Source: Ranitomeya imitator (lineage: Eukaryota). Taken from it: a stretch of DNA of 64,000 nucleotides. The stretch covers positions 59,954,001 to 60,018,000 of the forward strand of contig NC_091288.1 of assembly GCF_032444005.1 (NCBI RefSeq), written 5' to 3'. Position 1 is the first letter of the stretch; every line of letters begins with the position of its first letter. Position numbers and translations under genes: made by a program. Shown here piece by piece: positions 5,010 to 46,440 of the stretch. A model generated the notes under the pieces. The model was not told where the DNA came from, did no database searches, and saw only the letters and a list, made by a program, of their open reading frames with translations.

Positions 5010-5732
5010 AGGAAACCTATCGTGAGGTTTTTGCCAAGATTATTCGTGTCCACCACCTTTTTAGCCATCTTTAATACCTGCGAGCATAGCTGCCTTGCAT
5101 GCAGTGTCGGACTGGAGAGCCTAGGGCCCACCAGTAACCAACTCCAGGGCCCCACTTTTCAACTTCATGCAAATGTGACATTATCATCAATCACGAATTT
5201 ATATAACAATGATCTGGGTAGATTGTTACATGAATAAGATGCTGAAATTGTCTGTACATAGTGATTCAAGTATATTGTGCCAAATACTGCTCATATAAGA
5301 GTGTGGTGGCCCACCGGAGGATTCTCCTGTTTTCCAGTTGGCCAGTCCAGGCCTGTCTGCATAGCTAGGAAAATGCCTGTTATAATTGTTCCAGACTGTG
5401 TTCATTGCCTACATTACCTTCACTCCTGTTCTCATTGATGTGGAGGACTTCATTCCCACAACTAATGAGTCTGCGCAGTCAGGAACAAGATGTGTAAAGA
5501 CACAACAGTCTCCTACGTTAACGAGGCAGGTGGGCTGCTGATTGGAGGCAAAAAGGACGCGCTGAGCATAATCCGGAGATACTGACTGAACCGCCGATCA
5601 GATGGCATGGGACAACTATAAAAGGCATTTTCCTAGGTATGTGGGGCAGCTGGGTTCACCTGAAGGGCTTGCAGCGGTGCTATTAAAGATGGCTAAAAGG
5701 TAATGGGTATAGCATTTAGCGACAGGTTCCCT
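5010..5732. mobile_element. Kolobok/T2-type MITE with a nested hAT-like MITE (about 5101-5355)
   Basis: TTAA|AGGAAACCT ... AGGTTCCCT|TTAA. Internal CAGTGTCGGACTGG ... CCAGTCCAGGCCTG ends. Confidence 0.6.
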
Positions 5733-9809: not shown

Positions 9810-10256
9810 GTATATGTTTCATGCATTGAATGCGTTTCTTTTGAATCTTTCCTGCTCCCCCTATGCATCAAAAATTTCAGAGATATTGTAATAGTATACT
9901 CCGCTCCCCCTTCTTTGTAGCATATTAGATCACTATAATACTGTATATATTTCCTTGTAAAATTTATCTTTAGGGTTCTGCTTTGGAAGTTATTATGTCT
10001 CAAGTATGGAGGGTTTAATGTCATATGTAGGTATTCCATGCATTGAACGTGTTGCTTTTGAATCGGTCTTGCCCCTCCTGCACCTATGAGCCAAAATAAC
10101 TCCAGAGATACTAGAATAGTAGGCCCTGTATATATTTCCTTGAATTATTCGTTTGTGGATGTCTTCTTTGGGAGTTATTCTGTTTCTAGTATAGAGTGTC
10201 TAATCTCATTTGAATATTTTAACATGTATTTATGTACAGCACATTTATACAATGTA

Positions 10257-11133
10257 CCGTATATACTTGAGTATAAGCCGACCCGAGTATAAGCCGACCC
10301 CCCTAATTTTGCCACAAAAAACTGGGAAAACTTATTGACTCGAGTATAAGCCTAGGGTGGAAATGCAGCATTTACCGGTGAATTTCAAAAATAAAAATAG
10401 ATTATTTCCCCATCGCTGTGCCATATAGTGCTCTGCACCGTTCATATTGCCCCATATCTGTGCCCCATATAGTGCTCTGCACCGTTCATATTGCCCCATA
10501 TCTGTGCCCTATATGCTCTGCACCGTTCATATTTCCCTATAGATGCTCCACATAAATCTGTGCCGCTGCTGCAATAAAAAATAAAAAAAAGCCATACTCA
10601 CCTCTCTTGATTGCAGCTCCCAGCGTCTCGTTCCGCGCACACTATATGCGTCATCGCGCCCTCTGACCTGCACAGTCAGAGCGGAGGTAGACGCCGGGGA
10701 GATGGAGCGGCGCCCGGCGGCTGGAACGGGGACAGGTAAGTATGACATACTTACCTAGTCTCAGCGATCCTGGCGCTCCCCGCCTGTCACAAGGTCTTCT
10801 GTGCTGCAGCTCTTCCTGTCAGCGGTCACCGGCACCGCTGATTAGAGAAATGAATAGGCGGCTCCACCCCTATGGGAGGTGGAGCCGCCTATTCATTTCT
10901 CTAATGAGCGGTCCCACGTGACCGCTGAAGAGGGGAAGAAGCTGCAGCACCCGGAGACCGTGGGACGGCAGGGGGAGCGCCAGGATCGCTGGGACTAGGT
11001 AAGTATGCCTCAGCGCCCTCTCCCCCTCACCCGCCGACCCCACCGCTACCGTGACTCGAGTATAAGCCGAGAGGGGCACTTTCAGCCCAAAAATTTGGGC
11101 TGAAAATCTCGGCTTATACTCGAGTATATACGG
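10257..11133 (+). mobile_element. Tc2/pogo-like MITE (877 bp)
   Basis: TA|CCGTATATACTTGAGTATAAGCCGA ... TCGGCTTATACTCGAGTATATACGG|TA. CCGTA termini with a TA target are typical of TcMar-Tc2. Internal tandem repeats at about 10410-10530. Confidence 0.85.
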
Positions 11134-11364
11134 TATTTATTTTACAGTGAGGTTTTGACAAAGGTCGCCCCTGATCAAAACGTTAACCTTATTGTCTGCA
11201 ATCTACAGGTGTCATTAAGCACCTAGTTATGTCTGTACGCACGAATAAAGAAACAATATTTTTTGCATAATTTTCAACGATTTGAGTGCAGCTGATTCTC
11301 TTACGAATATTTGAAGCCCATATCAAAGGGGGGGTTCTGCCATCGGACGTACTATTCCTACTAT

Positions 11365-11515
11365 TGTGTGACAGCACTTATGAATCCCCCAGCGCATGCA
11401 CTGTGCGCTGCTGGGATTCGCCGGTTTATGACCTGGGACTGGAGGGTATGTATACATTATACATACTCCCGGCCAGAGCCTGTCTAGTGGGTGCAATCTT
11501 GCTTTCATACACTTG
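11365..11515 (-). mobile_element. Solo LTR, 3' part (inverted)
   Basis: On the minus strand it ends ...GCTGTCACACA followed by ATAG, the same 4 bp that precede the LTR start at 6634. Confidence 0.45.
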
Positions 11516-12147
11516 TATAGAGTGAGGTCACGCCCTCTAGTCAGCCACGCCCACTTCAAGGGTACGTCACTAGACCGGGTGCGGTCTCGGCTCAGCACAA
11601 GTGTATGGAGCAAGGCCACGCCCCCTGCACAGGTACGTCACTAGACAGGGTGCGGTCTCGGCGCAATGCAAGTCTATGGAGTGAGGCCACACCCCCTGCA
11701 CAGGTACGTCACTAGACGGGGTTCGGCCTCAGCTCAGTACAAGTGTATGGAGTGAGGCCACACCCCCTGCACAGGTACGTCACTAGACGGGGTGCGGCCT
11801 AAGCTCAGTACAAGTGTATGGAGTGAGGCCACACCCCCTGCACAGGTACGTCACTAGACGGGGTGCGGCCTAAGCTCAGTACAAGTGTATGGAGTGAGGC
11901 CACACCCCCTGCACAGGTACGGCACTAGACGGGGTGCGGCCTCAGCTCAGCACAAGTGTATGGAGTGAGGCCACACCCCCTGCACAGGTACGGCACTAGA
12001 CGGGGTGCGGCCTCAGCTCAGCACAAGTGTATGGAGTGAGGCCACACCCCCTGCACAGGTACAGCAGTAGACGGGGTGTGGCCTCGGCTCAGTACAAGTG
12101 TATGGAGTGAGGCCGCGCCCGTTGCACAGGTACGTCACTAGACAGGG

Positions 12148-18074: not shown

Positions 18075-18465
18075 TCAACATCTGCAGTCAAGATAAACAT
18101 ATGACCAGTGAGGAAAACAGGGACATCACTGCTGTGGTCCAGAAACTTTGATGAACTTTATGGCCCCGAATCGTGTATGCAATAAACTGTAGCTCCGGCA
18201 CCAGTCCACAATCATGTTGGCAGTCAGTGGGACAAGACTGGTCTGCTTTTTACGAACGCCAAAAGAACTAGGAAAAAGAGACCCCCAATGTAAGGCATAG
18301 TAGTCAGGAAAGTATCAATACTAAGCAGCAAGCTATACAGTACAGCACTAGTACTTCTGCATCTCCGCACCCTACAGGGGCACAATACAGACCCCTACAA
18401 TACGGATCGGAACTATAGTGACTTATAGCCTCATACAACAGTCCACTGTCAATGGCAACAGTATT

Positions 18466-18471
18466 TTTATT
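18466..18471 (-). promoter_or_regulatory. Candidate polyadenylation signal for the SRPK1 retrogene
   Basis: First minus-strand AATAAA that I found downstream of the stop codon (about 960 nt). Confidence 0.4.
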
Positions 18472-19432
18472 CTTTACCTTCACAATCTGTCATCACATAT
18501 GAAAAATGTGGTCAAAAAGGTTTCATCAACTGGATATGGAACAACAGATGTAAACCACCCGAACTGTCTCACTGCACCCTCTACTTATGTTAGACAACAC
18601 AAAAAAACAGATCTCTGGATAAAGAAATACCTGAAACCTTCAAAACGTTAATAGACGGAAACACAAACAAATCAAAGTATATAAAAAGAATGTAACTGTG
18701 GTGGATTAGACGCAAAGTCCTGAACAGAGTCCCGGGAGCCAACAGCGTCAGATCTTAGACTACGTTTATACGTTTCTGCCGACGGGCAGGGTCTTCATCG
18801 GGACTTACATCTGAGGCCCTGGAAAACGGGATTCGGAGTTGGCACTGACGGCCGGCTGCGTCTAGGAACCAGTCTCAAATAGGTGAATGAGGCCGAAAAT
18901 TGCGTCAGTGACCCCATCGTCACCATTACAGTCAATGGCCCCATCATGCAGACATCTGAATCCAGTTTCCCAGGGCTTCAGACGTAAGCCTCGAAGGAGC
19001 CGCTGACCGCAAGGAGCCTTGGTATTACCAGTGTGTAAAGCATCTTCAGCCATTACAGACTTGATGATACAAAAGTTCTATCAATTGGAAACATAACGAA
19101 TCGATGGGAATTATTTTTTGATAAATATTGAAGCCACCAAAAACTTGAAAATGGGTCCATTATAGTGGAACTCTACGAGAGCCAGGACTGCACGGTCATT
19201 GTAGGGCTTTCTTCATTCCCTCAAGAGAGGATTAACCTAATCCCTTAATTTCCACCATAAATCAGCTGGAAACCCCCATCATCCCATTAGATCCTCCACG
19301 CCGATCACTCATACCAGGAGTAGATGACAAGTCCACGGTCCACCTCTGATACTACTTTCGTCTGACAGGGGGTTGGAGGACAGCCCTTAAAAAACTGAAC
19401 AAGAAACACAACGAGGAGTCAATACTATGCCA

Positions 19433-21442
19433 CTATGACTGCAGCCAGGGGTGGCGGAGGCAGTGAGCTGCAGTCGCCCGCTTCTCAGGGGCCAACTCTA
19501 ACATGGGCAGCAGGAAGTCCGCAAAGCCTGAGGCATCCTCCTCAGACCACTCGTATTTCTCCTTCAGGACGTCGGCCAGACCCCACGGCTTCAGCTTTGA
19601 TATATGTTTCAGGTCTCCTTTTTTGGTGAAGAATTCTTTGGAGTATTTTCCTGCAGCAATGAGCTTCCGTGGAATGTGACCCAAGAGCTCGATGATCAGT
19701 GCAATGTGATCTTCATCACGGGAGTACTCCTCCCCGGAGTCAGGCTCAAATAAGTAATCTCCTGTGGCCAGCTCAAACGCCATGCAGGCCGTGCTCCAGA
19801 TATCTGCGGGGGTGCTGTATCCTGCCCCAAGGAGAACCTCCAGGGACCGATACTGCCTGGTCTGAATGTCCTCAGTGAAGTGTTTGTGCACCCAGCAGGC
19901 ATTGCCCAGGTCAGCAACTTTCACTCGGATTTTTTCAGCATTTTGGGGTTCTAGAGGGTTTATAAGGAAGTCTGCGGCGGTCAGTTTTTCATCAGCCATT
20001 AATACAGCTTCGTCTTTTATTGCAGGTTCTTTCTTCTCATCAGCTTCTTGATGGTGGAGGTCTTTGATGGTTTCTCCTTTGTGCTGAGGGACTTCTTCCA
20101 TAGATTCTTCTTTCTGCTGCTGAAGCGCCATAATGTCTTCTTTCTGCTGGTGGTTCTCCATGGCTTCTACTTTCTGTTGTTGGACCTCTTCCATGGCGTC
20201 TCCTTTCTGCATGTTGATTGACTCCATCTCTTCACCTTTCTGCTGGTGGATCTCCTCCATGGATTCTCTTTTTTGCTGGTGGATCTCCTCCATGGCTTCT
20301 CTTTTTTGCTGGTGGATCTCCTCCATGGCTTCTCTTTTTTGCTGGTGGATCTCCTCCATGGCTTCTCTTGTTTGCTGGTGGATCTCCTCCATGGCTTCTC
20401 TTGTTTGCTGGTGGATCTCCTCCATGGCTTCTTTTTGCTGGTGGACCTCCTCAGTATCACTCTGCCTGGGTGGTGGGCATGAATCGCCATCTGGGGTGGT
20501 AGGACTACAAGTGTTAGACTCCTCCTGGTCTTGGGTCTGGGCGCCATCTTCTTCTACTTCCATGCCGGCGATCTCCAGCACCCGCTTCTCCAGCAGTTCG
20601 GCTTGGCGCTTCTGCTTCTTCTTGAGCTTTCTCTTTTTGTTCTTTGTCAGTTTGGTGGAGGCCTTGGGCAGTGGCGCCGTGCTCACCACAGATCCAGAGG
20701 GCGGAGGGGCACCGGAGCGGAGCCATTGTGTGGCGTCACAGGCCAGCCGGCGGATGTAGGCGTCGTCCACGCACAGCAGGATGTTCTCCGGCTTCAGGTC
20801 GGTGTGGATGATCTTACACTTGGAGTGCATGTAGTCCAGGCCCTGCAGAACCTGCCGGACGATGCTCCTCACGCACTGCAGGGGCATGCCCTGGTAGTTG
20901 GACTTGATGATCCACTTCAGCAGGTGGTGGCCCAGCACCTCGAACACCATGCACACGTGGGAGCCGTTGGCCCCAGAGATCTTGAAGTCGTCCAGCAGCT
21001 GCACCACCCGGTCCCGGCCGCCGTCCCCGGGGTCCGTGCCCCTGACGGCTCTCAGCAGGCGGATCTCGTCCTGCGCGGTCTCCGTGTAGTGCTCCGCGCT
21101 TTTCACCACCTTCAGGGCCACAAACTGCTTCATCTGCAGGTCCCAGCACAGCCACACGGTGGAGAAGTGGCCCCAGCCCAGCTTGCGGATCACGTGGTAG
21201 CGGTTATTGAACAGGTCGCCAATCTGCACCCGATGGTAGCCCCCCTTACAGTAATCGTAGGGGTCCTCCTGCTCCTCGTCATCACTGCCCAGGATCTCCT
21301 CCTCCTCGTCCTCCGCGGGGTCCTCTGCGGGCGGATCCGGGGCGCAGCTGCGCGGCTGAGCTCCGTCTGCCACTTTCCGGAGAGGTTTCTTGGCTTTTGC
21401 CCGTTTCTTACGAGCCTGCAGTGCCAGCACCTTCCGCTCCAT
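19433..21442 (-). CDS. SRPK1: SRSF protein kinase 1-like, intronless retrocopy, 669 aa
   Basis: N-terminus MERKVLALQARKKR. Intact kinase motifs LGWGHFSTV, VALK, DEIRLL, HTDLKPEN, DLG, QTRQYRSLE and C-terminal LRHPWL. The kinase domain is split by a spacer. Single uninterrupted ORF, strong Kozak context (AAC ATG G). Confidence 0.95.
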   Translation of the reverse strand: MERKVLALQARKKRAKAKKPLRKVADGAQPRSCAPDPPAEDPAEDEEEEILGSDDEEQEDPYDYCKGGYHRVQIGDLFNNRYHVIRKLGWGHFSTVWLCWDLQMKQFVALKVVKSAEHYTETAQDEIRLLRAVRGTDPGDGGRDRVVQLLDDFKISGANGSHVCMVFEVLGHHLLKWIIKSNYQGMPLQCVRSIVRQVLQGLDYMHSKCKIIHTDLKPENILLCVDDAYIRRLACDATQWLRSGAPPPSGSVVSTAPLPKASTKLTKNKKRKLKKKQKRQAELLEKRVLEIAGMEVEEDGAQTQDQEESNTCSPTTPDGDSCPPPRQSDTEEVHQQKEAMEEIHQQTREAMEEIHQQTREAMEEIHQQKREAMEEIHQQKREAMEEIHQQKRESMEEIHQQKGEEMESINMQKGDAMEEVQQQKVEAMENHQQKEDIMALQQQKEESMEEVPQHKGETIKDLHHQEADEKKEPAIKDEAVLMADEKLTAADFLINPLEPQNAEKIRVKVADLGNACWVHKHFTEDIQTRQYRSLEVLLGAGYSTPADIWSTACMAFELATGDYLFEPDSGEEYSRDEDHIALIIELLGHIPRKLIAAGKYSKEFFTKKGDLKHISKLKPWGLADVLKEKYEWSEEDASGFADFLLPMLELAPEKRATAAHCLRHPWLQS
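20045..20452 (-). repeat. Coding 33-bp (11-aa) tandem repeat in the SRPK spacer
   Basis: EAMEEIHQQ(K/T)R x6 near-identical (about 20235-20452), plus about 6-7 degenerate units. Confidence 0.95.
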
Positions 21443-21950
21443 GTTCTCAGCCGGTCAGCGGAAGAGACATGCGCGAAGACCTCTGCCCTCTGTAACTTTT
21501 CTCCCGTCCCGCCTAACTGCTGCGCCGCTTCCTGGACACGCCCACCGCCATCTAAGTCACCGCTAAATCCCGCCTCTGCCGGCAGACCACGCCCTTTACC
21601 CAGCCGCTGCCCTGAGCGCTTTCCTGAGGACACTCCCGCTGTCAACCACGTCAGATGCAGAACTCCGCCTATCATGGAACGTCTGTTCTCAGACAACGCC
21701 CATCACTAGCCTTCTCTCCGCCCACTCCATCATCTCGGGGCTGAATCTCCGCTCATCGCTAAACAGCGCGAGATTCTTCTTCCAAATGCGATTGGTGGAT
21801 AAAAGCTTTCAGTCACGTGTGTAGTGGGCGTGTCTGTCTCTGACACCGGAAGCTTAAAATTACTGGTGATAACCAATTAGATTATACGGAACCTCCCAGT
21901 AGTCGGAAGCTAATGGCTGCGGCCAGGGAGGCACGGAGACCAGGCTGACG
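21443..21950. promoter_or_regulatory. CpG-island promoter, probably bidirectional
   Basis: CCAAT boxes (ATTGG 21791, CCAAT 21873), E-box CACGTG 21814, GC box GGGCGTG 21826, ETS motifs CCGGAAG 21846 and CGGAAG 21904. CpG-dense from about 20500 to 22050. Confidence 0.7.
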
Positions 21951-22126
21951 GTCTGTGCTGGGGACACGGGGTCACTGTGAATGTCGGTGTGTATCCGCGT
22001 GGGGCCGCTCCTCTCAGCGTCTCCCTCTGGCGTCATTGCCAGGTCTCTTCCTGTGTAATCTAGAAAGCTGTCAATCAAGCTGAGCAGCAGCCTGTGAGGC
22101 AAGCCCCTCCCAGCGGACTCCCAGCC

Positions 22127-22801
22127 TATAATGTCCCCCATCCTGGGCCCCTTCCCATAATAGTGTCACCCTCCCTATAATAATGTCCCCCATCCTGGGC
22201 CCCTTCCTATAATAGTGTCACCCTCCCTATAATAATGTCCCCCATCCTGGGTCCCTTCCCATAATAGTGTCACCCTCCCTATAATAATGTCCCCCATCCT
22301 GGGTCCCTTCCCATAATAGTGTCACCCTCCCTATAATAATGTCCCCCATCCTGGGCCCCTTCCTATAATAGTGTCACCCTCCCTATAATAATGTCCCCCA
22401 TCCTGGGTCCCTTCCCATAATAGTGTCACCCTCCCTATAATAATGTCCCCCATCCTGGGCCCCTTCCCATAATAGTGTCACCCTCCCTATAATAATGTCC
22501 CCCATCCTGGGCCCCTTCCTATAATAGTGTCACCCTCCCTATAATAATGTCCCCCATCCTGGGCCCCTTCCTATAATAGTGTCACCCTCCCTATAATAAT
22601 GTCCCCCATCCTGGGCCCCTTCCCATAATAGTGTCACCCTCCCTATAATAATGTCCCCCATCCTGGGCCCCTTCCCATAATAGTGTCACCCTCCCTATAA
22701 TAATGTCCCCCATCCTGGGCCCCTTCCTATAATAGTGTCACCCTCCCTATAATAATGTCCCCCATCATGGGCCCCTTCCTATAATAGTGTCCCTCTCCCT
22801 A
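22127..22801. repeat. 52-bp minisatellite (about 13 units), resuming at 24147-24192 and 24446-24603
   Basis: Unit ATAATGTCCCCCATCCTGGGCCCCTTCC(C/T)ATAATAGTGTCACCCTCCCTATA, period 52 (22141 to 22193). Confidence 0.95.
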
Positions 22802-24146
22802 TTATTTATTTATATAGCACCATTAATTCCATGGTGCTCTACATGAGAAAGGGGTTACATACAGAGTTATAGATATCATTTACAGTAAACAGGTTTACAC
22901 TGACGGACTGGCACAGAGGGGAGAGGACCCTGTCCTTGCGGACTTACATTCTATGGGATAGTGGGGAAGAGACAGAAGGTAGGGGCGAGGCGGTGGCTCC
23001 GGTGATGGCGAGGCGGCAGAATGGTTATTGCAGGCCGTAGGCTTTCTTGAAGAGATGGGTTTTCAGGTTCCGTCTGAAGGAGCCGAGGGTGGTGGATAGT
23101 CGGACGTGTTGAGGCGTGGAATTCCAGATGATGGGGGATATTCTGGAGAAATCGTGGAGGCGGTTGTGTGAGGAACGAATAAGTAAGTGTGGAGGAGAGT
23201 AGGAGGTCTTGGGAGGATCGGAGATTACGCGAGGGAAGGTATTGGGAGATTAGTTCAGAGATATTGGGAGGGGACAGGTTGTGGATGGCTTTGTAGATCA
23301 GTGTTAGTAGTTTGAACTGGATTCGTTGGGGAATTGGGAGCCAGTGGAGGGATTTGCAGAGGGGAGAAACGGGAATAGCGAGGAGAGAGGTGGATTAGCC
23401 GAGCAGCAGAATTGAGGACAGACTGGAGTGGTGCAAGAGAGTTAGCGGGGAGGCCACAGAGGAGGGTGTTGCAGTAGTCGTGGCGGGAGATGATGAGGGC
23501 GTGCACAAGAGTTTTGGTAGATTGTGGGCTGAGGAAGGAACGGATTCTGGCAATATTTTTGAGTTGGAGGCGACAGGAGGTGGCAGGAGTTTGGACGTGC
23601 GGTTTGAAGGACAGGGCAGAGTCGAGAGTTACTCAGAGGCAGCGGATTTCAGGTGCGGGAGAGAGCGTGATGCCGTTTACCATAATAGATAGGTCAGGTA
23701 GGGGGGATACGTGAGATGGGGGAAAGATGATGAATTCGGTTTTGTCTCCATTGAGTTTTAGGAAGAGAGAGGTGAAGAAGGAGGATATGGCTGACAGACA
23801 CTTCGGGATTCTGGACAGCAGAGAGGTGACATCTGGGCCAGAGAGGTAGATCTGAGTGTCGTCCGCATACAGGTGGTACTGGAAGCCGTGGGACTTTATG
23901 AGTTGTCGTAGGCCAAGAGTATAGATGGAGAAAAGTAGGGGCCCTAGGACAGAGCCTTGAGGGACTCAAGAGAGAGAGGGCGGGTGGGAAACGCTAAATG
24001 TGCGGTCAGAAAGGTATGAGGCAATCCAGGACAGGGCAAGGTCTTTGATGCCAAGGGAAGAAAGTCGATCACTGCCTACCGCTACAGATTCTGTGTCGGA
24101 AGCAGAAGACAGGTCAAGAAGGAGGAGGATGGAGAACTGTCTGTTA
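22802..24146 (-). mobile_element. 5'-truncated L2-clade LINE (RT remnant plus 3' end)
   Basis: Minus-strand remnants [18 protein letters not shown] (23938-23967), [14 protein letters not shown] (YADD 23858-23869) and LIISRHDYCNTLL..LQSVLNSAARL. Frameshifted. A/T-microsatellite tail with stem-loop at about 22802-22840. Confidence 0.9.
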
Positions 24147-24192: not shown

Positions 24193-24445
24193 AATAATAA
24201 TCTTTATTTTTATATAGCGCTAACATATTCCGCAGCGCTTTACAGGTTGCACACGTTATCATCGCTGTCCCCGTTGGGGCTCACAATCTAAATTCCCTAT
24301 CAGTATGTCTTTTGAATGTGGGAGGAAACCGGAGTACCCGGAGGAAACCCACAAACTCTTTGCAGATGTTGTCCTTAGTGGGGTTTGAACCCAGGACTCC
24401 AGCGCTGCAAGGCTGCTGTGCTAACCACTGCGCCACCGTGCTCCC
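24193..24445 (-). mobile_element. tRNA-derived SINE
   Basis: Minus strand starts GGGAGCACGGTGGCGCAGTGGTTAGC (A box) ... GGTTCAAACCC (B box) and ends in an ATT/TAA-type tail. Other copies at 63234-63499 and a fragment at 44178-44216. Confidence 0.9.
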
Positions 24446-24836
24446 TATAATAATGTCCCCCATTCTGGGCCCCTTCCTGTAAGTGTCGCCATCCTGTAAT
24501 GTCCCCAAGCCTGGGCCCCTTCCTATAATAGTGCTCCCCTCCATACAATAATGTCCCCCATCCTGGGCCCCTTCCTATAATAATGTCCCCCATCCTGGGC
24601 CCCGTATCAAATTGGATGTATGAATGAACCAGTACAGTGGCAGAGATCGACTTTCAAGTCAAGACTTATTAGCTGCAACCTAAATACCTTGCCAAGTATC
24701 TCTACTCCTCGCACCCAGCGTCCCGGAACTTACCGTGCCCCATCGCCCAGCTCGCTGCCATGCACAGTGGGTACAGATAGGAATAAGCAATAATGTGCTT
24801 CTCTTCTCAGTGACTGGTGGGAGATGAGCAACAGCC

Positions 24837-24954
24837 ATGGCTCTTTCCGCCTCTTCAGCATTTCGACTGTTGCATGGAATGTTTGCTGTTTATAAACCTC
24901 CGGGGATTCGATGGAAGTTTGTACGAGACACAATAGAGATGAAGCTGCTGCAAG
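24837..24954 (+). CDS. TRUB2: TRUB2 (mitochondrial pseudouridine synthase TruB family) coding exon 1 of 8
   Basis: MALSASSAFRLLHGMFAVYKPPGIRWKFVRDTIEMKLLQ; donor AAG|GTAATT; 118 nt. Confidence 0.92.
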
Positions 24955-25031
24955 GTAATTCCGTGTTAGTGGAGACGTTCAGGTCGGAGCTCTTGTCTTG
25001 TGCACAAGTAATGGTTCGTTTCTTCACATAG

Positions 25032-25163
25032 GGCTGAACTCGCTGAAGCAGCCGCCTCCTCGGCAGCAGGTCCTGTTCCTACCACAAAGCAATGAGAACA
25101 GCAGTAACCTGGAACTTACCAAAGTGGCCACCTCCGTTCCCGTCCTGGCCGATCATGTTCTGG
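25032..25163 (+). CDS. TRUB2: TRUB2 exon 2
   Basis: TAG|G...G|GTCAGT; GLNSLKQPPPRQQVLFLP...VPVLADHVL; 132 nt. Confidence 0.9.
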
Positions 25164-25250
25164 GTCAGTCCCGTTCCTCTAGGCTTGCTCCTTAGGATTA
25201 CAGATATCATACCTATGTTATATCAGTGTAACGTCTCTCTGGTTTAACAG

Positions 25251-25325
25251 TTAAAGGACCAAGGTATACTTTCCTGAGGATCGGCGTGGGGCACAAGCTG
25301 GATACACGGTCATCAGGAGTCTTTG
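25251..25325 (+). CDS. TRUB2: TRUB2 exon 3 (catalytic Asp motif)
   Basis: CAG|TT...G|GTGAG; VKGPRYTFLRIGVGHKLDTRSSGVF; 75 nt. Confidence 0.93.
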
Positions 25326-25790
25326 GTGAGCTTGACGTAAAATTGATGCACAGTTTTTACAGAAAGGATGATAAGCTGCACAGAGCTTCTGTGTCCTCAT
25401 TAAAGGGAATCTTACTAGGATTTTTCTGCAAAGGCAGCAAAAAAGTGATAGAGACCCAGATTTCAGCACTGCGAAACTTTCCTGCCTTAATTGCCATAAA
25501 ATCCGCTACAGCAGGAGCCCAGTGGGGAGTCCTGGTGTCCAGGATTCATAGCTCTGTGCAAAACATGCAGGAGGCTCTAGAATATAAAGACAGAAGTACT
25601 CCTCCTTACCGATTCCTCCCCGCCACTCCTCTTCCTGGGCCGCTGCCGGTCTCTGTGCATCCTTTTGTGGTCGGCAGGTGAGATCGGTAAGGAGAGTGTG
25701 ATTTATTTTTGTATTGGGCTCCCTATATTACGGCTGCACCGTTTACAATGAGCCAGGTTGTAGTGAAAAAAATCCATACCTTGATGTTAG

Positions 25791-26192
25791 AAATCTCTTT
25801 TTTTGGCATTTCTAAGCAATCCAACATTGAAATCTTATGCAAATGAGCCGCATGTGCGTCAGGGTGGGAAATGCACTCGCAGTTCTCTCGCCCGCCACCT
25901 GGCTCCTGTGTCAGACTGATGGGTCAGTCTAGTTTTCTTTACCTTAGTGGGAAGCCGAAATGCCCTGTCTCCCACCCCAATGCGCGTGTCGACGTTTTTT
26001 TCTTCCGTGACGTCCCCGGAAGAAGAAAACATCAAAACGCGCGTTGGGGTGGGCACTTTACTTTTATCAATGTTAAAATTAACCTACCCTTAAAATTAGG
26101 CTGCTTACGTCTTTGTCAGTGGGCAAACTTACAAAAATCAACACGATAAGATTTCAATGTTGGATTGCTTAGAAATGCCAAAAAAGAGATTT
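25791..26192. mobile_element. Intronic MITE-like element with about 47-bp inverted repeats
   Basis: 25791-25838 is the reverse complement of 26146-26192 (one T-run difference). Confidence 0.7.
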
Positions 26193-26430
26193 TCAGACTG
26201 TAAGGCCGCTATTTGGACGTGACTTACCATGGCAAACATCAGGACCACAAAATCATGATCTGAGGGCACCAGTTTGGATAAAGAGGAAGCCCCCACACTC
26301 TGTTAACCATTTATATGATGTAGTCACTTGATAGCAGCATCTAAGGGGTTAAACAGATTTGGAAGGTGAGATTTTTTTTTTTTTTTTATTAATACACATC
26401 GTGATTGATTTTTCATGTCTTGTTTTTCAG

Positions 26431-26492
26431 TACTTGGGATTGGGAACGGTAACAAACTTCTTACTGACATGTATGACAACCATTATACGAAG
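26431..26492 (+). CDS. TRUB2: TRUB2 exon 4
   Basis: TTTCAG|TA...AAG|GTATG; VLGIGNGNKLLTDMYDNHYTK; 62 nt. Confidence 0.93.
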
Positions 26493-26631
26493 GTATGATC
26501 GGATGTGATTTTCGTGTGTAGCTTTCTGATGTATTTTCAGATTTTAGAAGTGTATTTAGTCTATATTTGCAATATTATTTTTATAATTGAATTTATTAAC
26601 AGATCTTTTACAATTTTGTTTCATTTAAAAG

Positions 26632-26713
26632 GACTATACAGTGTCTGGTATGTTTGGTAAAGCCACAGATGACTTTACAGATACGGGAAAAGTTATCGAG
26701 AAGACGACGTACA
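26632..26713 (+). CDS. TRUB2: TRUB2 exon 5
   Basis: AAAG|GAC...A|GTGAGT; DYTVSGMFGKATDDFTDTGKVIEKTTY; 82 nt. Confidence 0.93.
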
Positions 26714-26946
26714 GTGAGTGTCCGTAAGGGGTTATCTGAGAGTTGCCTTAGGGCATGTGATCGCTGCTGGCTTGTATCTTCCTCCGATGTATATGTTATC
26801 AGGACTGACATCGTATATATACGCTGGCTTCAGTGCTGCTTCTTAATAGCTCATGTATGGTCATAAAGATGATAACCTAATGGAGCACATTCTTCACAAT
26901 TCCAAATGTAGTCTTATTTTTTATTTTTTTTTCCTTTTCCCCACAG

Positions 26947-27019
26947 AACACATAACAAAAGACAGATTGGAGCGGGTCTTGGCCATGCTTCAGGGTTCAA
27001 ACCAAAAGGCATTGCTGAT
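26947..27019 (+). CDS. TRUB2: TRUB2 exon 6
   Basis: CCACAG|AA...AT|GTATGT; KHITKDRLERVLAMLQGSNQKALLM; 73 nt. Confidence 0.92.
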
Positions 27020-27569
27020 GTATGTGAGCTTACAATTAATTTTATGAATAGTTTTTTGTTTAATATTTTCTTCATACCGATACATATGATATGTCGTGCG
27101 ATTGGTTAGCAATGCCTTTTTTATCCGCTCTTACCTTTACCATTCCTAATAGTTGCAGTGCTAGAGTATGTGCGCCCGTGTGCATCTATACAACATTGCG
27201 GTGGATAATTTGGTGTGGTTGCGTTCTACATATTTTCCATCATGGACCATATTATCTGGAGCATGAAATGCTACACGTCATATAAATGGTCACTTGTATG
27301 ACATTCTCCAACTTTCCGCAGGTCTTGGCTGGCATAGGCTGTCTGCTTTGTGGAGTAGATGAACTTACACACGGACATCGCTTGTTACAGACTCATCTGT
27401 TTTTTTGCAACGTTTTTTCAATCCAGAACCGTAGAATTGGTCTAAGAAGGCAGATTTCCTATACCACATTGTATTCATGAAAAGTGACATAAAAGTCAGT
27501 CTTATTAAATGTTGTGAAATGTTTCCTAGTCTTGTGAATAACATATTCTTTTATCTATTTGTGTTCTAG

Positions 27570-27706
27570 GCACAGTCAGGTCGACATAAAGAGTCAGGAG
27601 GCATATGACATGGCAGTAGAAGGCCAGCTCCGGCCTATGGTAAAATCGCCACCCCTCCTGCTTGGACTGCGATGTGTTGAGTTTTCACCACCTGACTTCA
27701 CTTTAG
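27570..27706 (+). CDS. TRUB2: TRUB2 exon 7
   Basis: TTCTAG|G...G|GTAGG; HSQVDIKSQEAYDMAVEGQLRPMVKSPPLLLGLRCVEFSPPDFTL; 137 nt. Confidence 0.93.
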
Positions 27707-28726
27707 GTAGGGGTCTTATTTATGGCGTTGTAAGGGAAGAAGGACAAAGGTACAAACGGACCAGATAAAGAACAGTCTCATGCGTAGTCCTATATATCAG
27801 TGAATATATGCAGACTGTAGGGGCTCATTCAGACCAGAGCATCATACGTACATGTGCTGTCTGTGGTGAAACCAGATATCATGAATTAATATTATTTAAT
27901 AGGTCTGTTCAGATGAGTATTTTTTCACGTGGAGCAAGTGTGAAGTTTTGAAGTTATCCCCTGTAGGAAATGAAATAACTTGACGTTTGCTGGGGGGTCC
28001 AACCACAAATGCAGAGAATCGGGCTACAAAGAACCCCGTCTCAATGAACGGAGGTCGAGCATGTGCACCTCAGCTCCATTTTTTATGGGACTGCTGGAAA
28101 AAGCAGATTACAACTAGCCATGGCAATCCCATAAAGAAAGAATGGAGCAGAGATGCACATGATCGACCTCCTTGGAAGACCCTTCCTCTGCAATTGATGA
28201 CCTGCGGTCTGTAAGTAGACCCCTATTCTGTGGGCACGGAATGACTTCAAAACTTGGCACCATACCCTTTAAGAGCCACATATGAGACCCTATAGATTAG
28301 TGGGCTGTAGGCCTCAATACATTGATGCCATGTACTATATAATAAATGACAGAAGATGTATTTTCCATATACAGAGAGTAGCAGCCTCTATATATAGTAT
28401 ACACATAGGCGTCCTGATACTGCAGGCTATGAAATATTAGGGAAGCAATGTCTTCTGTTCATCTGCTTTCGTCTGATCCAAGTTGGTCAAAAGTAGAAGA
28501 TGTCTTTGGAGTTCACCTGGTACATTTTATATACTGTCCAGGTATTGTTTACAGGACATTACGGTGAAAAAGCATTATTTCCTGAAAAACTAGACCAGCC
28601 ATGGTGTCCATACAATATTGCGATACGTAGGTGTATATCACTGGATGATCATCTAGCCTAGAACAATATTCCTGGTGTAGATAATGTCCATATTCACCAA
28701 AACCTCACCATTTCTGTCTCATTCAG

Positions 28727-29013
28727 AGATCCAGTGCATGCACGAGACTCAGCAGTATCTTCGCAAACTAATCCACGAGATCGGCTTAGAACTAAGATCC
28801 TCCGCCGTCTGCACCAAGGTTCGCCGCACACGGGACGGGCCTTTCACCTTGGACTGTGCTTTAACACACGGACACTGGGATCTGGACAGCATCAGCCATG
28901 CCATTAACGAGTGCAAACCTATAGCTACACAGGTACAGAAACCTGATGGCAGCTTGATCTGGGAGAAGCCAGACGACGATTCACTGGGTAACGTAGGGAG
29001 GAACTTGCAGTGA
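28727..29013 (+). CDS. TRUB2: TRUB2 exon 8 (last)
   Basis: TTCAG|AG; EIQCMHETQQYLRKLIHEIGLELRSSAVCTKVRRTRDGPFTL...NLQ*. The eight exons sum to 966 nt = 321 aa plus stop, in frame throughout. Confidence 0.93.
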
Positions 29014-31729: not shown

Positions 31730-32897
31730 ATGGCTCCAACACGAGAGATGTCAATTGAAACAAAGGAGAGGATTATCAAACTCTTAAGGCTGCCGTCACA
31801 CTATCAGTATTTGGTCAGTATTTTACATCAGTATTTGTAAGCCAAAACCAGGAGTGGAACAAATAACGGAAAAGTATAATAGAAACATATGCACCACTTC
31901 TGTATTTATCACCCACTCCTGGTTTTGGCTTACAGATACTGAGGTAAAATACTGACCGAATACTGCTAGTGTGACAGCAGCCTAAAAAAGGGTTGGTTGT
32001 TCACAGTCAGCTGTGTCTAAAATCTGGACCAAATACAAACAACATGGGAAGGTTATTAAAGGCAAACATACTGGTAGACCAAGGAGGACATCAAAGCGTC
32101 AAGACCAGAAACTTAAAGCAATATGTCTCCAAAACAGAAAATGCACAACAAAACAAATGAGGAACGAATGGGTGGAAACTGGAGTCAATGTCTGTGACTG
32201 AACTGTAAGAAACTGCCTAAAGCAAATGGGATTTACATACAGAAAAGCTAAACAAAAGCCATCATTAACACCTAGACAGAAAAAAACAAGGTTACAATGG
32301 GCTAAGGAAAAGCAATCGTGGACTGTGTATGACTGGATGAAAGTCATATTCAGTGATGAATCGCGAATCTGCATTGGGCAAGGTGATGATGCTGGAACTT
32401 TTGTTTGGTGCCGTTCCAATGAGATTTATAAAGATGACTGCCTGAAGAGAACATGCAAATTTCCACAGTCATTGATGATATGGGGCTGCATGTCAGGTAA
32501 AGGCACTGGGGAGATGGTTGTCATTACATCTTCAATAAATGCACAAGTTTATGTTGATATGTTGGATGCTTTTCTTATCCCATCAATTGAAAGGATGTTT
32601 GGGGATGATGAAATCATTTTTCAAGATGATAATGCATCCTGCCATAGAGCAAAAACTGTGAAAATATTCCTTGAAAAAGACACAAAAGGTCAATGTCATG
32701 GCCTGCAATTGAAAATCTCTGGTGGAAGTTGAAGAAAATGGTCCATGACAAGGCTCCAACCTGCAAAGCTGATCTGGCAACAGCAATCAGAGAGAGTTGG
32801 AGCCAGATTGATGGAGTCCTGTGTGACACTCATTAAGTCCATGCCTCAGAGACTGCAAGCTGTTATAAAAGCCAGAGGTGGTGCAACAAAATACTAG
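31730..32897 (+). pseudogene. Tc1 DD34E transposase pseudogene
   Basis: MAPTREMSIETKERIIKLL..., GRPR, FSDESR, WGCM, FQDDNA, ...RGGATKY*. Disrupted by a MITE, an in-frame TGA, a frameshift and loss of the SPDLN motif. Confidence 0.9.
31788..31982. mobile_element. Harbinger-like MITE inserted in the transposase
   Basis: TAA|GGCTGCCGTCACACT ... AGTGTGACAGCAGCC|TAA. Confidence 0.88.
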
Positions 32898-44714: not shown

Positions 44715-46440
44715 ATGAGACGGACTCTACAACCCACACAAGTGGCTCAGGTAGTGCAGCTCATCCAGGATGGCACATCAATGCGAGCTGTGGCAAGAAG
44801 GTTTGCTGTGTCTGTCAGCGTAGTGTCCAGAGGCTTGAGGCGGTGCCAGGAGACAGGCCAGTACACCAGGAGACGTGGAGGGGGCCGTGTTATGATCCGG
44901 TGACCTTGCAGCCGCATGAAACTTTCTCTGGAGTAGGTGGTAACTGTACTGGCCGCAAATCCTGAACTAACACCGCAACTAGAAGTAGCCGTGGGGTGTG
45001 CCTAACAAACCCTAGACACCTCGACACAGCCGGAGGACTAAATACCCCTATAGATGGAAATAGGAATTCTACCTTGCCTCAGAGCAGAACCCCAAAGGAT
45101 AGGCAGCCCCCCACGAATATTGACTGTGAGTAGGAGAGGAAAGACACATGCTGGCAGAAAAGAGGATTTAGCAAAAGAGGCCACTCTAGCTAAATAGGAA
45201 AGGATAGGACAGAATACTAAGCGGTCAGTATTAAAACCCTTCCAAAAATATCCACAGCAGATAATACAAAAATTCCACCATCTAACTAAAGACGTGGAAC
45301 GTATATCTGCAACTCCTGAGAATCCAACTAGACTGAGTAAATACTGACACAATCTAAGCTGGACAAGAAAAAACAAATGAATAGCACTGAATTATCTAGC
45401 ACACAGCATGAGTGCCACAGAAACAAAACCAGACACTTATCTTTGCTGATTTGGCAGCAAGGCACACCTAAATACCCAAGTCAGAACTGCAATCAGCAGA
45501 TACACCTGACCAGGACTGCAACCCAGGGACAACTGCATTACCACCTACGACCACCGGAGGGAGCCCAAAAGCAGAATTCACAACAGGGCTGTAGGAGGGC
45601 AACAACCCTGCATCCGGACCGTTACCTCAGCCTTTGTGCAAGGAGGAACAGGAGGAGCACTGCCAGAGCCATGCAGAATGACCTACAGCAGGCCACAAAT
45701 GTGCATGGGTCTGCACAAACGGTTAAAAATTGACTCCATGAGGATGGTCTGAGTGCCCGACGTTCACAGGTGGGGGTTGTGGTCACAGCCCAACACCGTG
45801 CAGGATGCTTGGCATTTGCCACAGAACACCAGGATTGGCAAATTCACCACTGGCGCCCTGTGCTCTTCACAGATGAAAGCAGGTTCACACTGAGCACATG
45901 TGACAGACATGAGAGAGTCTGGAGACGCCGTGGAGAGCGATTTGCTGCCTGCAACATCCTTCAGCATGACTGGTTTGGCAGTGGATCAGTAATGGTGCGG
46001 GGTGGTATTTCTTTGGAGGGCCCCACAGCCCTCCATGTGCTCGCCAGAATTAGCCTGACAGCCATTAGGTACCGAGATGAGATTCTCAGAGCCCTTGTGA
46101 GACCATATGCTGGTGCGGTTGGCCCTGGGTTCATCCTGATGCAGGACAATGCCAGACCTCATGTGGCTGGAGTGTGTCAGCAGTTCCTGCAAGATGGAGG
46201 CATTTAAGCTATAGACTGGCCGCCCGTTTTCCAGACCTGAATCCGATTGAACACATCTGGGACATCATGTCTCGCATCATCCACCAATGTCACGTTGCAC
46301 CACAGACTGTCCAGTTGGCGGATGCTTTAGTCCAGGTCTGGGAGGAGGTCCCTCAGGAGTCCATCCGCCGCCTCATCAGGAGCATGTGCAGGCGGTGTAG
46401 GGAAATCATACAGGCACGTGGAGGCCACACACACTACTGA
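44715..46440 (+). pseudogene. Tc1 DD34E transposase pseudogene
   Basis: [16 protein letters not shown]..., FTDESRF, MQDNARPH, PDLNPIEH, RGGHTHY*. In-frame stops near 45731 and 46205 and an LTR insertion. Confidence 0.9.
44888..45585. mobile_element. Solo LTR (698 bp)
   Basis: TGTTA ... CAACA termini, flanked by GGGCCG / GGGCTG. The transposase frame resumes exactly after it. Confidence 0.85.

Follow-up and report, generated by a model that had tools for sequence, protein, structure and literature searches.

Orphan retrogenes, in which a retrocopy survives its multi-exon parent and takes over the parent's function, have been described in mammals, e.g., RNF113, and nine of ten such genes carry a CpG-island-type promoter (Ciomborowska et al., 2013, PMC3548309; Carelli et al., 2016, PMC4772013). 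Retrocopies which make use of the bidirectional promoter of a neighbor lie head-to-head with it within 2 kb (Carelli et al., 2016, PMC4772013). The SRPK1-type gene of Ranitomeya imitator, found on the 64-kb stretch of DNA analyzed here (the window), resembles the mammalian orphans in its CpG-island-type promoter, in the purifying selection acting on it and in an apparently broad expression; like them it is annotated as an ordinary gene, its nature as a retrogene having gone unrecognized. Unlike them, it belongs to an amphibian, is fixed on the stem of the Neobatrachia and encodes a core kinase of splicing regulation, and the loss of its parent is deduced from proteomes. With the second group it shares the head-to-head arrangement with a housekeeping-type gene; in Gastrophryne, Mixophyes and Bufo, 0.9–2.1 kb separate the two coding starts. 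Unlike in that group, however, the gap amounts to 3.4 kb in the window, where it holds a CpG-free tandem array, and to 7.4 kb in E. coqui. A literature search for a frog SRPK1 retrogene, an intronless SRPK1 or neobatrachian retrogenes found no published report of this frog gene. A paper on bat Helitrons was rejected as a precedent, as it deals with the capture of a promoter and an exon fragment of SRPK1 and not with an SRPK1 retrogene.

SRPK1, which is conserved and single-copy, regulates the phosphorylation of splicing factors, and the spacer of the mammalian enzyme controls its cytoplasmic anchoring. The window contains a single uninterrupted ORF of 2010 nt, as originally predicted; it lies on the minus strand, starts with ATG, is free of internal stops and encodes 669 amino acids. 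The next independent ORF anywhere in the 64 kb comprises only 229 amino acids, so that this ORF, three times as long, is no product of chance. The start codon lies in a strong Kozak context (GAGAAC-ATG-G, with A at -3 and G at +4). The features of the locus are compiled in Table 1.

Table 1. Features of the SRPK1-type locus in the window (positions count from the first letter of the window).
Feature	Position	Strand	Remarks
SRPK1-type intronless CDS, complete	19433..21442	-	669 codons + stop
Kinase domain, first half (residues 60-258; Gly-loop, catalytic Lys VALK, HTDLKPEN)	20669..21265	-	
Spacer insert separating the kinase halves (residues 259-487)	19982..20668	-	K-rich start conserved, remainder remodelled
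33-nt tandem repeat, 9.8 copies, 11-residue unit EAMEEIHQQKR-like, within spacer	20136..20452	-	
Kinase domain, second half (residues 488-669; DLG, activation segment, MAP-kinase-type insert, docking groove)	19436..19981	-	
5' UTR and core-promoter block	21443..21560	-	Conserved in neobatrachians; colinear with the 5' ends of relatives' transcript contigs
CpG-rich patch: 5' end of ORF and ~550 nt upstream	21000..22000		Same patch in Mixophyes and E. coqui
Inferred 3' UTR	18450..19432	-	AATAAA at 18466-18471
TruB-family pseudouridine synthase gene, TRUB2-like	24837..28992	+	8 coding exons mapped; head-to-head, 3.4 kb away

The identity of the encoded protein was established on several levels. 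All of the named genes among the best 120 matches of a database search were SRPK1. The best solved structure was human SRPK1 (6fad, E 1.8e-250), with 836 bits compared to 740 bits for SRPK2, and the alignment spans residues 45-258 and 488-669, which flank a spacer of 229 residues; in agreement, Pfam matched Pkinase in two stretches with a spacer in between. The two kinase lobes show 82–84% identity to other vertebrate SRPK1 (82% over both lobes in comparison with primate SRPK1). The window protein has the bipartite kinase with spacer, the catalytic motifs, the MAP-kinase-type insert (seen in the structure alignment) and the acidic docking-groove segments in common with vertebrate SRPK1 (human; PDB 6fad, 1wak, 4wua), and also the N-terminus, MERKVLALQARKKR. 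The original prediction named a complete set of catalytic motifs and a retained docking groove, and both statements held: translation and alignment with human SRPK1 place the Gly-loop GWGHFSTV, the Lys of VALK, the Glu of DEIRLL, HTDLKPEN, ADLGNA, TRQYRSLE and DIWS, and the docking segments TGDYLF, RDEDH, IIELL and EKYEW match the human sequence exactly in the alignment. Because catalytic machinery, docking groove and bipartite architecture are all kept, SRPK1-like activity is expected, and the product is predicted from its sequence to be an active kinase. It would dock on the RS domains of SR factors and phosphorylate them processively; protamine-like proteins may be further substrates.

Differences to vertebrate SRPK1 concern gene structure, spacer and rate of evolution. 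The vertebrate gene consists of about 16 exons and has a different genomic neighborhood, whereas the window gene has no introns. Eight substitutions are clade-wide, including Met to Leu beside the catalytic Lys and Ile to Leu in HTD(I/L)KPEN. The window spacer does not contain the SQLQESIR-type motif which aligns between Discoglossus and human SRPK1, but a lineage-specific array of 11-residue units instead. The underlying 33-nt repeat array was also found in Anomaloglossus and is therefore regarded as dendrobatoid-specific. The regulatory spacer appears to have been free to evolve and, in the poison-frog lineage, to have been rebuilt by this tandem repeat.

The canonical genes of Pelodytes and Hymenochirus, each of about 50 kb with at least 14–16 exons, bear out the expectation that vertebrate SRPK1 is multi-exonic and that its first exon encodes only MERK. 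In Pelodytes (L009, 20219-20231) this exon reads ATG GAG AGG AAA G and is followed by a GTGAGT donor, and the exon starting with VLALQ follows 2 kb downstream after an AG acceptor; the first exon of Hymenochirus is the same. In the window ORF, MERK is joined directly to VLALQ, and none of the mapped intron positions (at least 13 in Pelodytes, about 15 in Hymenochirus) is kept. Intronless and intact copies were found in eight frogs: in the window, in Anomaloglossus (649 amino acids in 1950 nt), Bufo (587 in 1764 nt), E. coqui (one ORF of 591 amino acids), Aquarana (607 in 1824 nt) and Mixophyes (592 in 1779 nt), and in a hyloid frog and a ranid, the latter two represented by contigs only. As had been stated, no poly(A) tail remnant survives in the window copy, and no run of six or more A is present around position 18450, where the 3' end is presumed to lie; since an erasure of poly(A) tail and target-site duplications is expected at such an age, the missing tail is weak evidence either way and offers no positive hallmark. 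The 3' UTR of the retrogene shows no homology to those of the two canonical genes, but these do not match one another either, so that the comparison is uninformative. Boxes in common with the canonical 5' UTR of Hymenochirus (GGGCGTG, and GCGCATG...ACCGG just before the ATG) are too short to be scored.

A phylogenetic tree, from which SRPK2 and SRPK3 were left out, recovered the anuran SRPK1 sequences with a support of 100/100 and the window protein nested within them. All intronless genes form one clade (100/100) with an inner topology equal to the frog phylogeny, and the intronless genes of the neobatrachians therefore have a single origin. In the unconstrained tree the canonical frog genes grouped together (90/79) and the retrogene clade was not nested beside Pelodytes; a position as sister to Pelodytes was, however, not rejected (p-AU 0.168). 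Five coding sequences are intact at the DNA level, and pairwise omega values amount to 0.04–0.08 in the kinase lobes (380 codons, 10 pairs) and to 0.2–0.36 in the N-terminus and spacer. The intronless protein has evolved at two to three times the rate of canonical frog SRPK1, with Tajima tests giving mostly p 1e-2 to 1e-5. Presence in all neobatrachians sampled, a conserved TruB neighbor, the single clade, the low omega and the transcript-like contigs of relatives together characterize the gene as an old, selected retrogene. This agrees with the original prediction of an old retroduplicate kept open by selection: the gene is common to Ranoidea, Myobatrachoidea and Hyloidea, the lobes show the low dN/dS, and the orthologs, in which disruptions had been named as a sign against function, are intact in six other assemblies.

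The predicted CpG-island character of the 5' end was found as well, as GC content over the CpG-rich patch ranges from 0.54 to 0.67 and CpG o/e from 0.77 to 1.01, compared to 0.61 for the whole window. Between the window and Mixophyes or E. coqui, the 5' UTR/promoter block shows 79–83% identity over about 120–138 nt, and in these three no intergenic conservation was detected beyond the kinase gene's own 120–140 nt. Comparison with the transcript contigs of relatives revealed no intron in the 5' UTR. These transcript-like contigs have a length of about 2.6–3.0 kb and derive from many runs; in a related hyloid frog, the ends of six contigs (about 2.6 kb, different runs) fall 12–40 nt behind one AATAAA, which is orthologous to the signal in the window. 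An exact match of the bullfrog protein was present in 112 separate run assemblies on contigs of 2–5 kb, which hints at a broad expression that is not restricted to the germline; the tissue of origin of the runs was looked up and none was found, and no record was obtained for the exact proteins of Nanorana, Ascaphus and Xenopus laevis. For R. imitator, 19 small contig sets from seven studies share up to 0.82 of the words in 18400-21800, with no run recorded as RNA, and expression of the gene in this species is presumed.

At 7/7 neobatrachian loci (the window and six further assemblies) a TruB_N gene lies head-to-head, 0.9–7.4 kb upstream of the kinase gene. Pfam searches with its single exons and with the other long ORFs of the window yielded nothing except a weak TruB_C_2 match in the last exon. 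A bidirectional promoter shared with this gene at present was considered and rejected: promoter sharing today is unlikely because of the gaps of 3.4 and 7.4 kb, because conservation is confined to the 120–140 nt beside the kinase ATG and because the CpG patch belongs to the kinase gene itself. As to the mode by which the retrogene acquired its promoter, the insertion site may have lain in open chromatin; parts of the parental core promoter may also have been carried along by the retrocopy, which we regard as a lead.

The fate of the multi-exon parent was addressed by two protein searches with canonical frog SRPK1 and the window protein as queries against annotated proteomes and transcript-derived proteins. 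Among the matches listed, canonical-type SRPK1 was returned only for the non-neobatrachians Discoglossus, Bombina, Xenopus, Hymenochirus, Ascaphus and Pelodytes, and for 19 neobatrachian species both searches returned the intronless SRPK1 alone, in a protein collection that is incomplete (no SRPK1 of Spea or Pelobates appeared, for example). A canonical copy would be expected above 950 bits, and the list for the canonical query extends down to 911. As canonical SRPK1 was obtained only outside the Neobatrachia, the intronless gene looks like their sole SRPK1, and the multi-exon parent has presumably been lost from the genome of R. imitator, where an unannotated or decayed parent might still be present.

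We consider it probable, with good confidence, that the gene is a functional SRPK1 retrogene which replaced its lost parent on the neobatrachian stem and now acts as the only SRPK1, i.e., as an orphan retrogene. The original prediction favored an additional SR-protein kinase, and a persisting parent with a second, possibly specialized kinase of SRPK1 type (e.g., in the germline) would indeed correspond to the usual fate of functional retrogenes; the two- to threefold faster evolution and the remodelled spacer would fit sub- or neofunctionalization, and the search for the parent covered protein sets. This part of the prediction is nevertheless probably wrong, and we consider a second kinase unlikely, given that none of the 19 neobatrachian species yielded a canonical-type SRPK1 in the matches listed while six non-neobatrachian genera were recovered, that the occurrence of the bullfrog protein in 112 run assemblies is unlike tissue restriction, and that omega values such as those of the lobes are typical of a core housekeeping kinase.

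A single SRPK1 per neobatrachian proteome is also what would be observed if the ancestral locus had recombined with its own cDNA and lost all introns in situ, without duplication, the TruB neighbor resulting from an older or later rearrangement. The 5' UTR boxes resembling those of Hymenochirus would suit this explanation, but they are predicted by retroposition, too. We consider it less probable still than a second kinase, and the genomic surroundings speak against it: no TruB exons were found in the two canonical loci of 70 kb, neither upstream of exon 1 (20 kb in Pelodytes, 5 kb in Hymenochirus) nor elsewhere, whereas the TruB gene accompanies the kinase gene at all seven neobatrachian loci. 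Human SRPK1 (6p21) and TRUB2 (9q34) reside on different chromosomes. A precise and simultaneous removal of about 15 introns combined with relocation is the outcome of retroposition, and the apparently relocated position beside the TruB gene speaks for a retroposition with later loss of the parent rather than for intron loss. The absence of an intron-containing parent, which had been put forward as a sign of intron loss, thus stands for the neobatrachian proteins searched, but its interpretation is the less likely one, as the TruB neighbor favors retroposition. Finally, the lack of introns alone would be compatible with a functionless processed pseudogene or with contamination of the assembly by a cDNA, either of them open by chance; in view of the length of the ORF, the intact orthologs that six other assemblies show in this genomic context, the low omega and the conserved promoter block and poly(A) signal, this explanation is effectively refuted.

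According to the replacement of the parent by its retrocopy, a full-length SRPK1 mRNA would have undergone reverse transcription, and the copy would have landed close to the 5' end of a TruB-family (TRUB2-like) gene on the stem of the Neobatrachia, after the split of the Pelobatoidea and before the divergence of Ranoidea and Hyloidea. Transcription of the retrocopy would run from its own compact CpG-rich promoter to the conserved AATAAA and yield an unspliced mRNA of about 3.1 kb, and the multi-exon parent would then have been lost, leaving the retrogene as the only SRPK1 of neobatrachian frogs. With somewhat less confidence, but still as the likelier course, we assume that SRPK1 of the neobatrachian ancestor thereby became independent of splicing, without splice isoforms and with a new compact promoter that maybe includes part of the parental core promoter, and that since then the kinase has evolved at its two- to threefold rate while the spacer was rebuilt repeatedly by lineage-specific tandem repeats. 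The faster evolution and repeated rebuilding suggest a relaxed or rewired control of the localization of the kinase.

An intronless frog SRPK1 is new in kind neither as a molecule nor as a mechanism. Neobatrachia comprise the great majority of living frog species, and the gene would, if the replacement is true, represent a clear amphibian orphan retrogene, a class mainly described in mammals, in a clade of thousands of species. The replacement would also explain why annotation pipelines label the frog gene "SRPK1-like" instead of SRPK1, and orthology tables as well as cross-species inferences between Xenopus and Rana, Bufo or poison frogs would need correction. The locus may serve as a natural experiment on how a housekeeping gene rebuilds its promoter within about 120 nt, on the expression of an intronless mRNA encoding a splicing regulator, and on the share of the SRPK1 spacer that is dispensable. 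If the reading holds, the main SR-protein kinase gene of these frogs would have been freed from splicing, the very process under its own regulation.

The kinase gene consists of one uninterrupted frame; the longest unrelated ORF of the 64-kb window, whose 133 N were left as they are, is about a third as long. In its product the Pfam match to a protein kinase domain is split into two stretches. Among solved structures human SRPK1 (6fad, E 1.8e-250) ranks first, with an alignment that begins at residue 45 and extends to the final residue; the SRPK2 structure scored about 100 bits lower. Translation and structure alignment confirmed the complete set of catalytic motifs described in the original prediction, and all four docking-groove segments named there were found in the product. 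The strong Kozak context (A at -3, G at +4) and the CpG-rich 5' end likewise proved correct, and an A-rich trace was not found at the 3' end of the retrogene, in agreement with the reported lack of a poly(A) remnant.

Coordinates of features in the window
Feature	Position	Strand	Remarks
SRPK1-type ORF	19433..21442	minus	single 2010-nt frame, 669 codons
Predicted mRNA	~21560 to ~18450		unspliced, about 3.1 kb
Retrogene 5' UTR	21443-21560		
CpG-rich 5' end	21000-22000		CpG o/e 0.77-1.01 (0.61 window-wide)
Alignment to hyloid AATAAA and preceding sequence	18454-18710		
Poly(A) signal	18466-18471		likely cleavage site near 18450
52-nt tandem repeat	22128-22802		13.0 copies, 97% matches, zero CpG
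Degenerate copies of the 52-nt unit	24441-24603		just upstream of TruB start
G-over-C biased stretch	23000-24000		GC skew +0.54
TruB gene	24837-28992	plus	eight coding exons
Transposon remnants	32319-32660; 45827-45943		39-41% protein identity to Mixophyes ORF

The canonical SRPK1 gene of Pelodytes ibericus spans 50.6 kb and that of Hymenochirus boettgeri at least 50 kb. Mapping of a canonical protein onto the DNA yielded at least 14 coding exons in Pelodytes, and the Hymenochirus gene has about 16 exons. In both species exon 1 reads ATG GAG AGG AAA G before a GTGAGT donor, by which the earlier statement that the first exon encodes only MERK holds for frogs, and the VLALQARKK exon begins 2 kb further downstream, behind an AG acceptor. 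All these junctions are joined in frame in the window ORF. The true MERK exon is located at 20219-20231 of the Pelodytes locus (L009) and at 5156-5168 of the Hymenochirus locus (L013), and the public models of both canonical genes have wrong 5' ends (L009 10001-39368; L013 5156 / 10001): the first 234 residues of the Pelodytes model derive from a repeated, transposon-like element present in both orientations, and the start of the Hymenochirus model falls within an intron.

The nearest protein to the ORF product is an 'SRPK1-like' protein of Anomaloglossus baeobatrachus (87% full-length). Similar 'SRPK1-like' proteins occur in Leptodactylus, Dendropsophus, Eleutherodactylus, Pristimantis, Hyla, Rhinoderma, Engystomops, Bufo, Pyxicephalus, Pseudophryne, Mixophyes, Mantella, Lithobates, Aquarana, Gastrophryne, Hyperolius, Staurois and Nanorana. 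The gene span equals three times the protein length plus the stop codon in four species, namely Anomaloglossus (649 aa, 1950 nt), Bufo (587 aa, 1764 nt), Aquarana (607 aa, 1824 nt) and Mixophyes (592 aa, 1779 nt). The DNA of E. coqui contains one uninterrupted ORF of 591 aa (10001-11776 of locus L001); since the annotated product of 558 aa is shorter, its model wrongly treats 99 nt of the spacer as an intron. In Gastrophryne the model exceeds the need of its protein by 390 nt, which may be an artefact of the same kind. The intronless gene is common to all sampled neobatrachians and is found at one locus.

In each of the six assemblies the kinase gene has a head-to-head neighbor 0.9-7.4 kb upstream that encodes a TruB_N-domain protein (322-344 aa), and TruB-like exons were not found in the two 70-kb canonical loci. 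The last exon of the window gene gave weak matches to TRUB1 and archaeal Cbf5 and a weak TruB_C_2 match, which together with the size of the gene fit a putative TRUB2. A transposon ORF is nested inside the TruB gene of Mixophyes, and two remnants resembling it in the window have a Tc1/mariner-type look without a Pfam match. The gap between the kinase and TruB genes harbors a 52-nt tandem repeat. Next to this C-rich tandem array (skew -0.34) lies a 1-kb G-over-C biased stretch; a tandem structure was not detected in it, and it has the look of a repeat element of unclassified type.

A maximum likelihood tree of 44 proteins (582 columns) united all anuran SRPK1 (100/100), and within these the intronless genes form a single clade (100/100) with a stem length of 0.29. 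Branching inside this clade follows the frog phylogeny, with Ranoidea separated from Myobatrachoidea plus Hyloidea, and the window protein is paired with that of Anomaloglossus (100/100). The canonical frog genes cluster weakly in the free tree (90/79); forcing the retrogene clade as sister to Pelodytes, the species-tree expectation, cost 1.8 log-likelihood units and was not rejected (p-AU 0.168). From the tree and this placement we infer that the retrocopy dates from between the pelobatoid split and the sampled neobatrachian radiation.

For the comparison on DNA level five coding sequences were used (window, E. coqui, a hyloid frog, Mixophyes and Aquarana), and the frame is intact in all of them. 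Omega of the kinase lobes is 0.04-0.08 in all ten pairs (Nei-Gojobori, 380 codons), deep pairs being approximate with dS near or above 1, and reaches 0.12-0.36 in the N-terminus and spacer. The gene had been described as an old retroduplicate under selection: with intact frames and low lobe omega the selected SRPK1 retrogene stands; duplication beside a kept parent is unlikely. Against SRPK1 of primate, turtle, salamander or coelacanth, identity of the retrogene lobes is 81-84%, compared with 86-89% for the canonical frog genes, and Tajima relative-rate tests assigned 2-4 times more lineage-specific changes to the retrogene (e.g., window 38 vs. Discoglossus 14, p 9e-4). Eight substitutions, all conservative, are fixed clade-wide against all other vertebrates sampled, among them a Met-to-Leu change beside the catalytic lysine and an Ile-to-Leu change within the catalytic loop.

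The complete ORF was present on seven contigs from seven runs of a hyloid frog, six of about 2.6 kb and a seventh cut short at 2.15 kb. The contig 5' ends are grouped 75-120 nt upstream of the ATG, and the 3' ends of six contigs lie 12-40 nt past one AATAAA, which is the signature of polyadenylated mRNA. This signal and the preceding sequence align to the window and thereby locate the window's own signal and likely cleavage site. The 5' UTR of the contigs runs colinear with the window sequence, and across ~120-140 nt upstream of the ATG the identity among window, Mixophyes and E. coqui is 79-83%; in the remaining intergenic DNA of these three no alignable stretch was found. The colinear, conserved 5' UTR points to a compact promoter of the gene's own without a 5'-UTR intron. 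Two boxes conserved across neobatrachians were seen here, GGGCGTG ~100 nt upstream and CGCGCATGTCTCTTCC...ACCGG directly before the ATG. The canonical Hymenochirus 5' region (L013 about 5030-5155) contains resembling boxes at similar distances, too short to score, and a carry-over of the parental core promoter is possible judging from these sequences. Contigs of 2-5 kb in 112 separate run assemblies encode the exact bullfrog protein. In R. imitator, 19 runs of seven studies contain the stretch, with at most 0.82 of the words sampled from 18400-21800, the contig sets comprising only 52-145 million letters each and the run type being marked 'RNA?' or '?'. The 0.82 plateau presumably represents the predicted mRNA minus its 317-nt tandem repeat.

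A protein search with the canonical Discoglossus SRPK1, with matches listed down to 911 bits, returned canonical-type proteins of Discoglossus, Bombina, two Xenopus species, Hymenochirus, Ascaphus and Pelodytes at 941-1409 bits, where 1409 bits is the self-match of the query and the others reach up to 1159. One caecilian and two salamanders were also among the matches. The neobatrachian matches listed are intronless proteins only (913-936 bits), and a search with the window protein gave the same pattern. Had neobatrachians kept the parent, its protein should look like those of the canonical frog genes and exceed 950 bits; among the matches listed, canonical-type SRPK1 was absent from 19 annotated neobatrachian species and from transcript-derived entries. 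That a multi-exon parent was retained is therefore unlikely, and the original prediction of an additional SR-protein kinase probably gives way to replacement, as the protein matches listed for these 19 species are of the intronless type only. Still less probable is a loss of the introns in situ via cDNA conversion, against which the missing TruB neighborhood of the canonical loci speaks, though the canonical flanks compared are short. A pseudogene or artefact is excluded by conservation. Most likely the retrogene is a replacement, not an addition, and on the most economical reading of the sequences the parent would have been lost on the neobatrachian stem, leaving the retrogene as sole SRPK1. 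Read in this way, the frog gene fits the 'orphan retrogenes' as Ciomborowska et al. (PMC3548309) define them, a class also studied by Carelli et al. (PMC4772013); it shares with them a CpG-type promoter and was likewise annotated without recognition as a retrogene. No report of a frog SRPK1 retrogene was found in the literature.

Within the spacer of the window ORF a 33-nt unit is present in 9.8 copies; it codes for an 11-residue repeat and is shared with Anomaloglossus, likewise a dendrobatoid. Leptodactylus (P0003) has a different repeat of the SSDGLN/SSDSLAN type at the same place, and the Mantella protein (P0016) is unusually long with 691 aa. Tandem repeats seem to have grown in the spacer again and again, with own expansions per lineage. 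By homology, the frog protein would be a constitutively active SR-protein kinase, in which RS-domain substrates would be docked in the conserved groove and then phosphorylated. What would differ from canonical SRPK1 is the regulation: a short new promoter rich in CpG would drive transcription, the mRNA would need no splicing, and the spacer is under loose constraint only.
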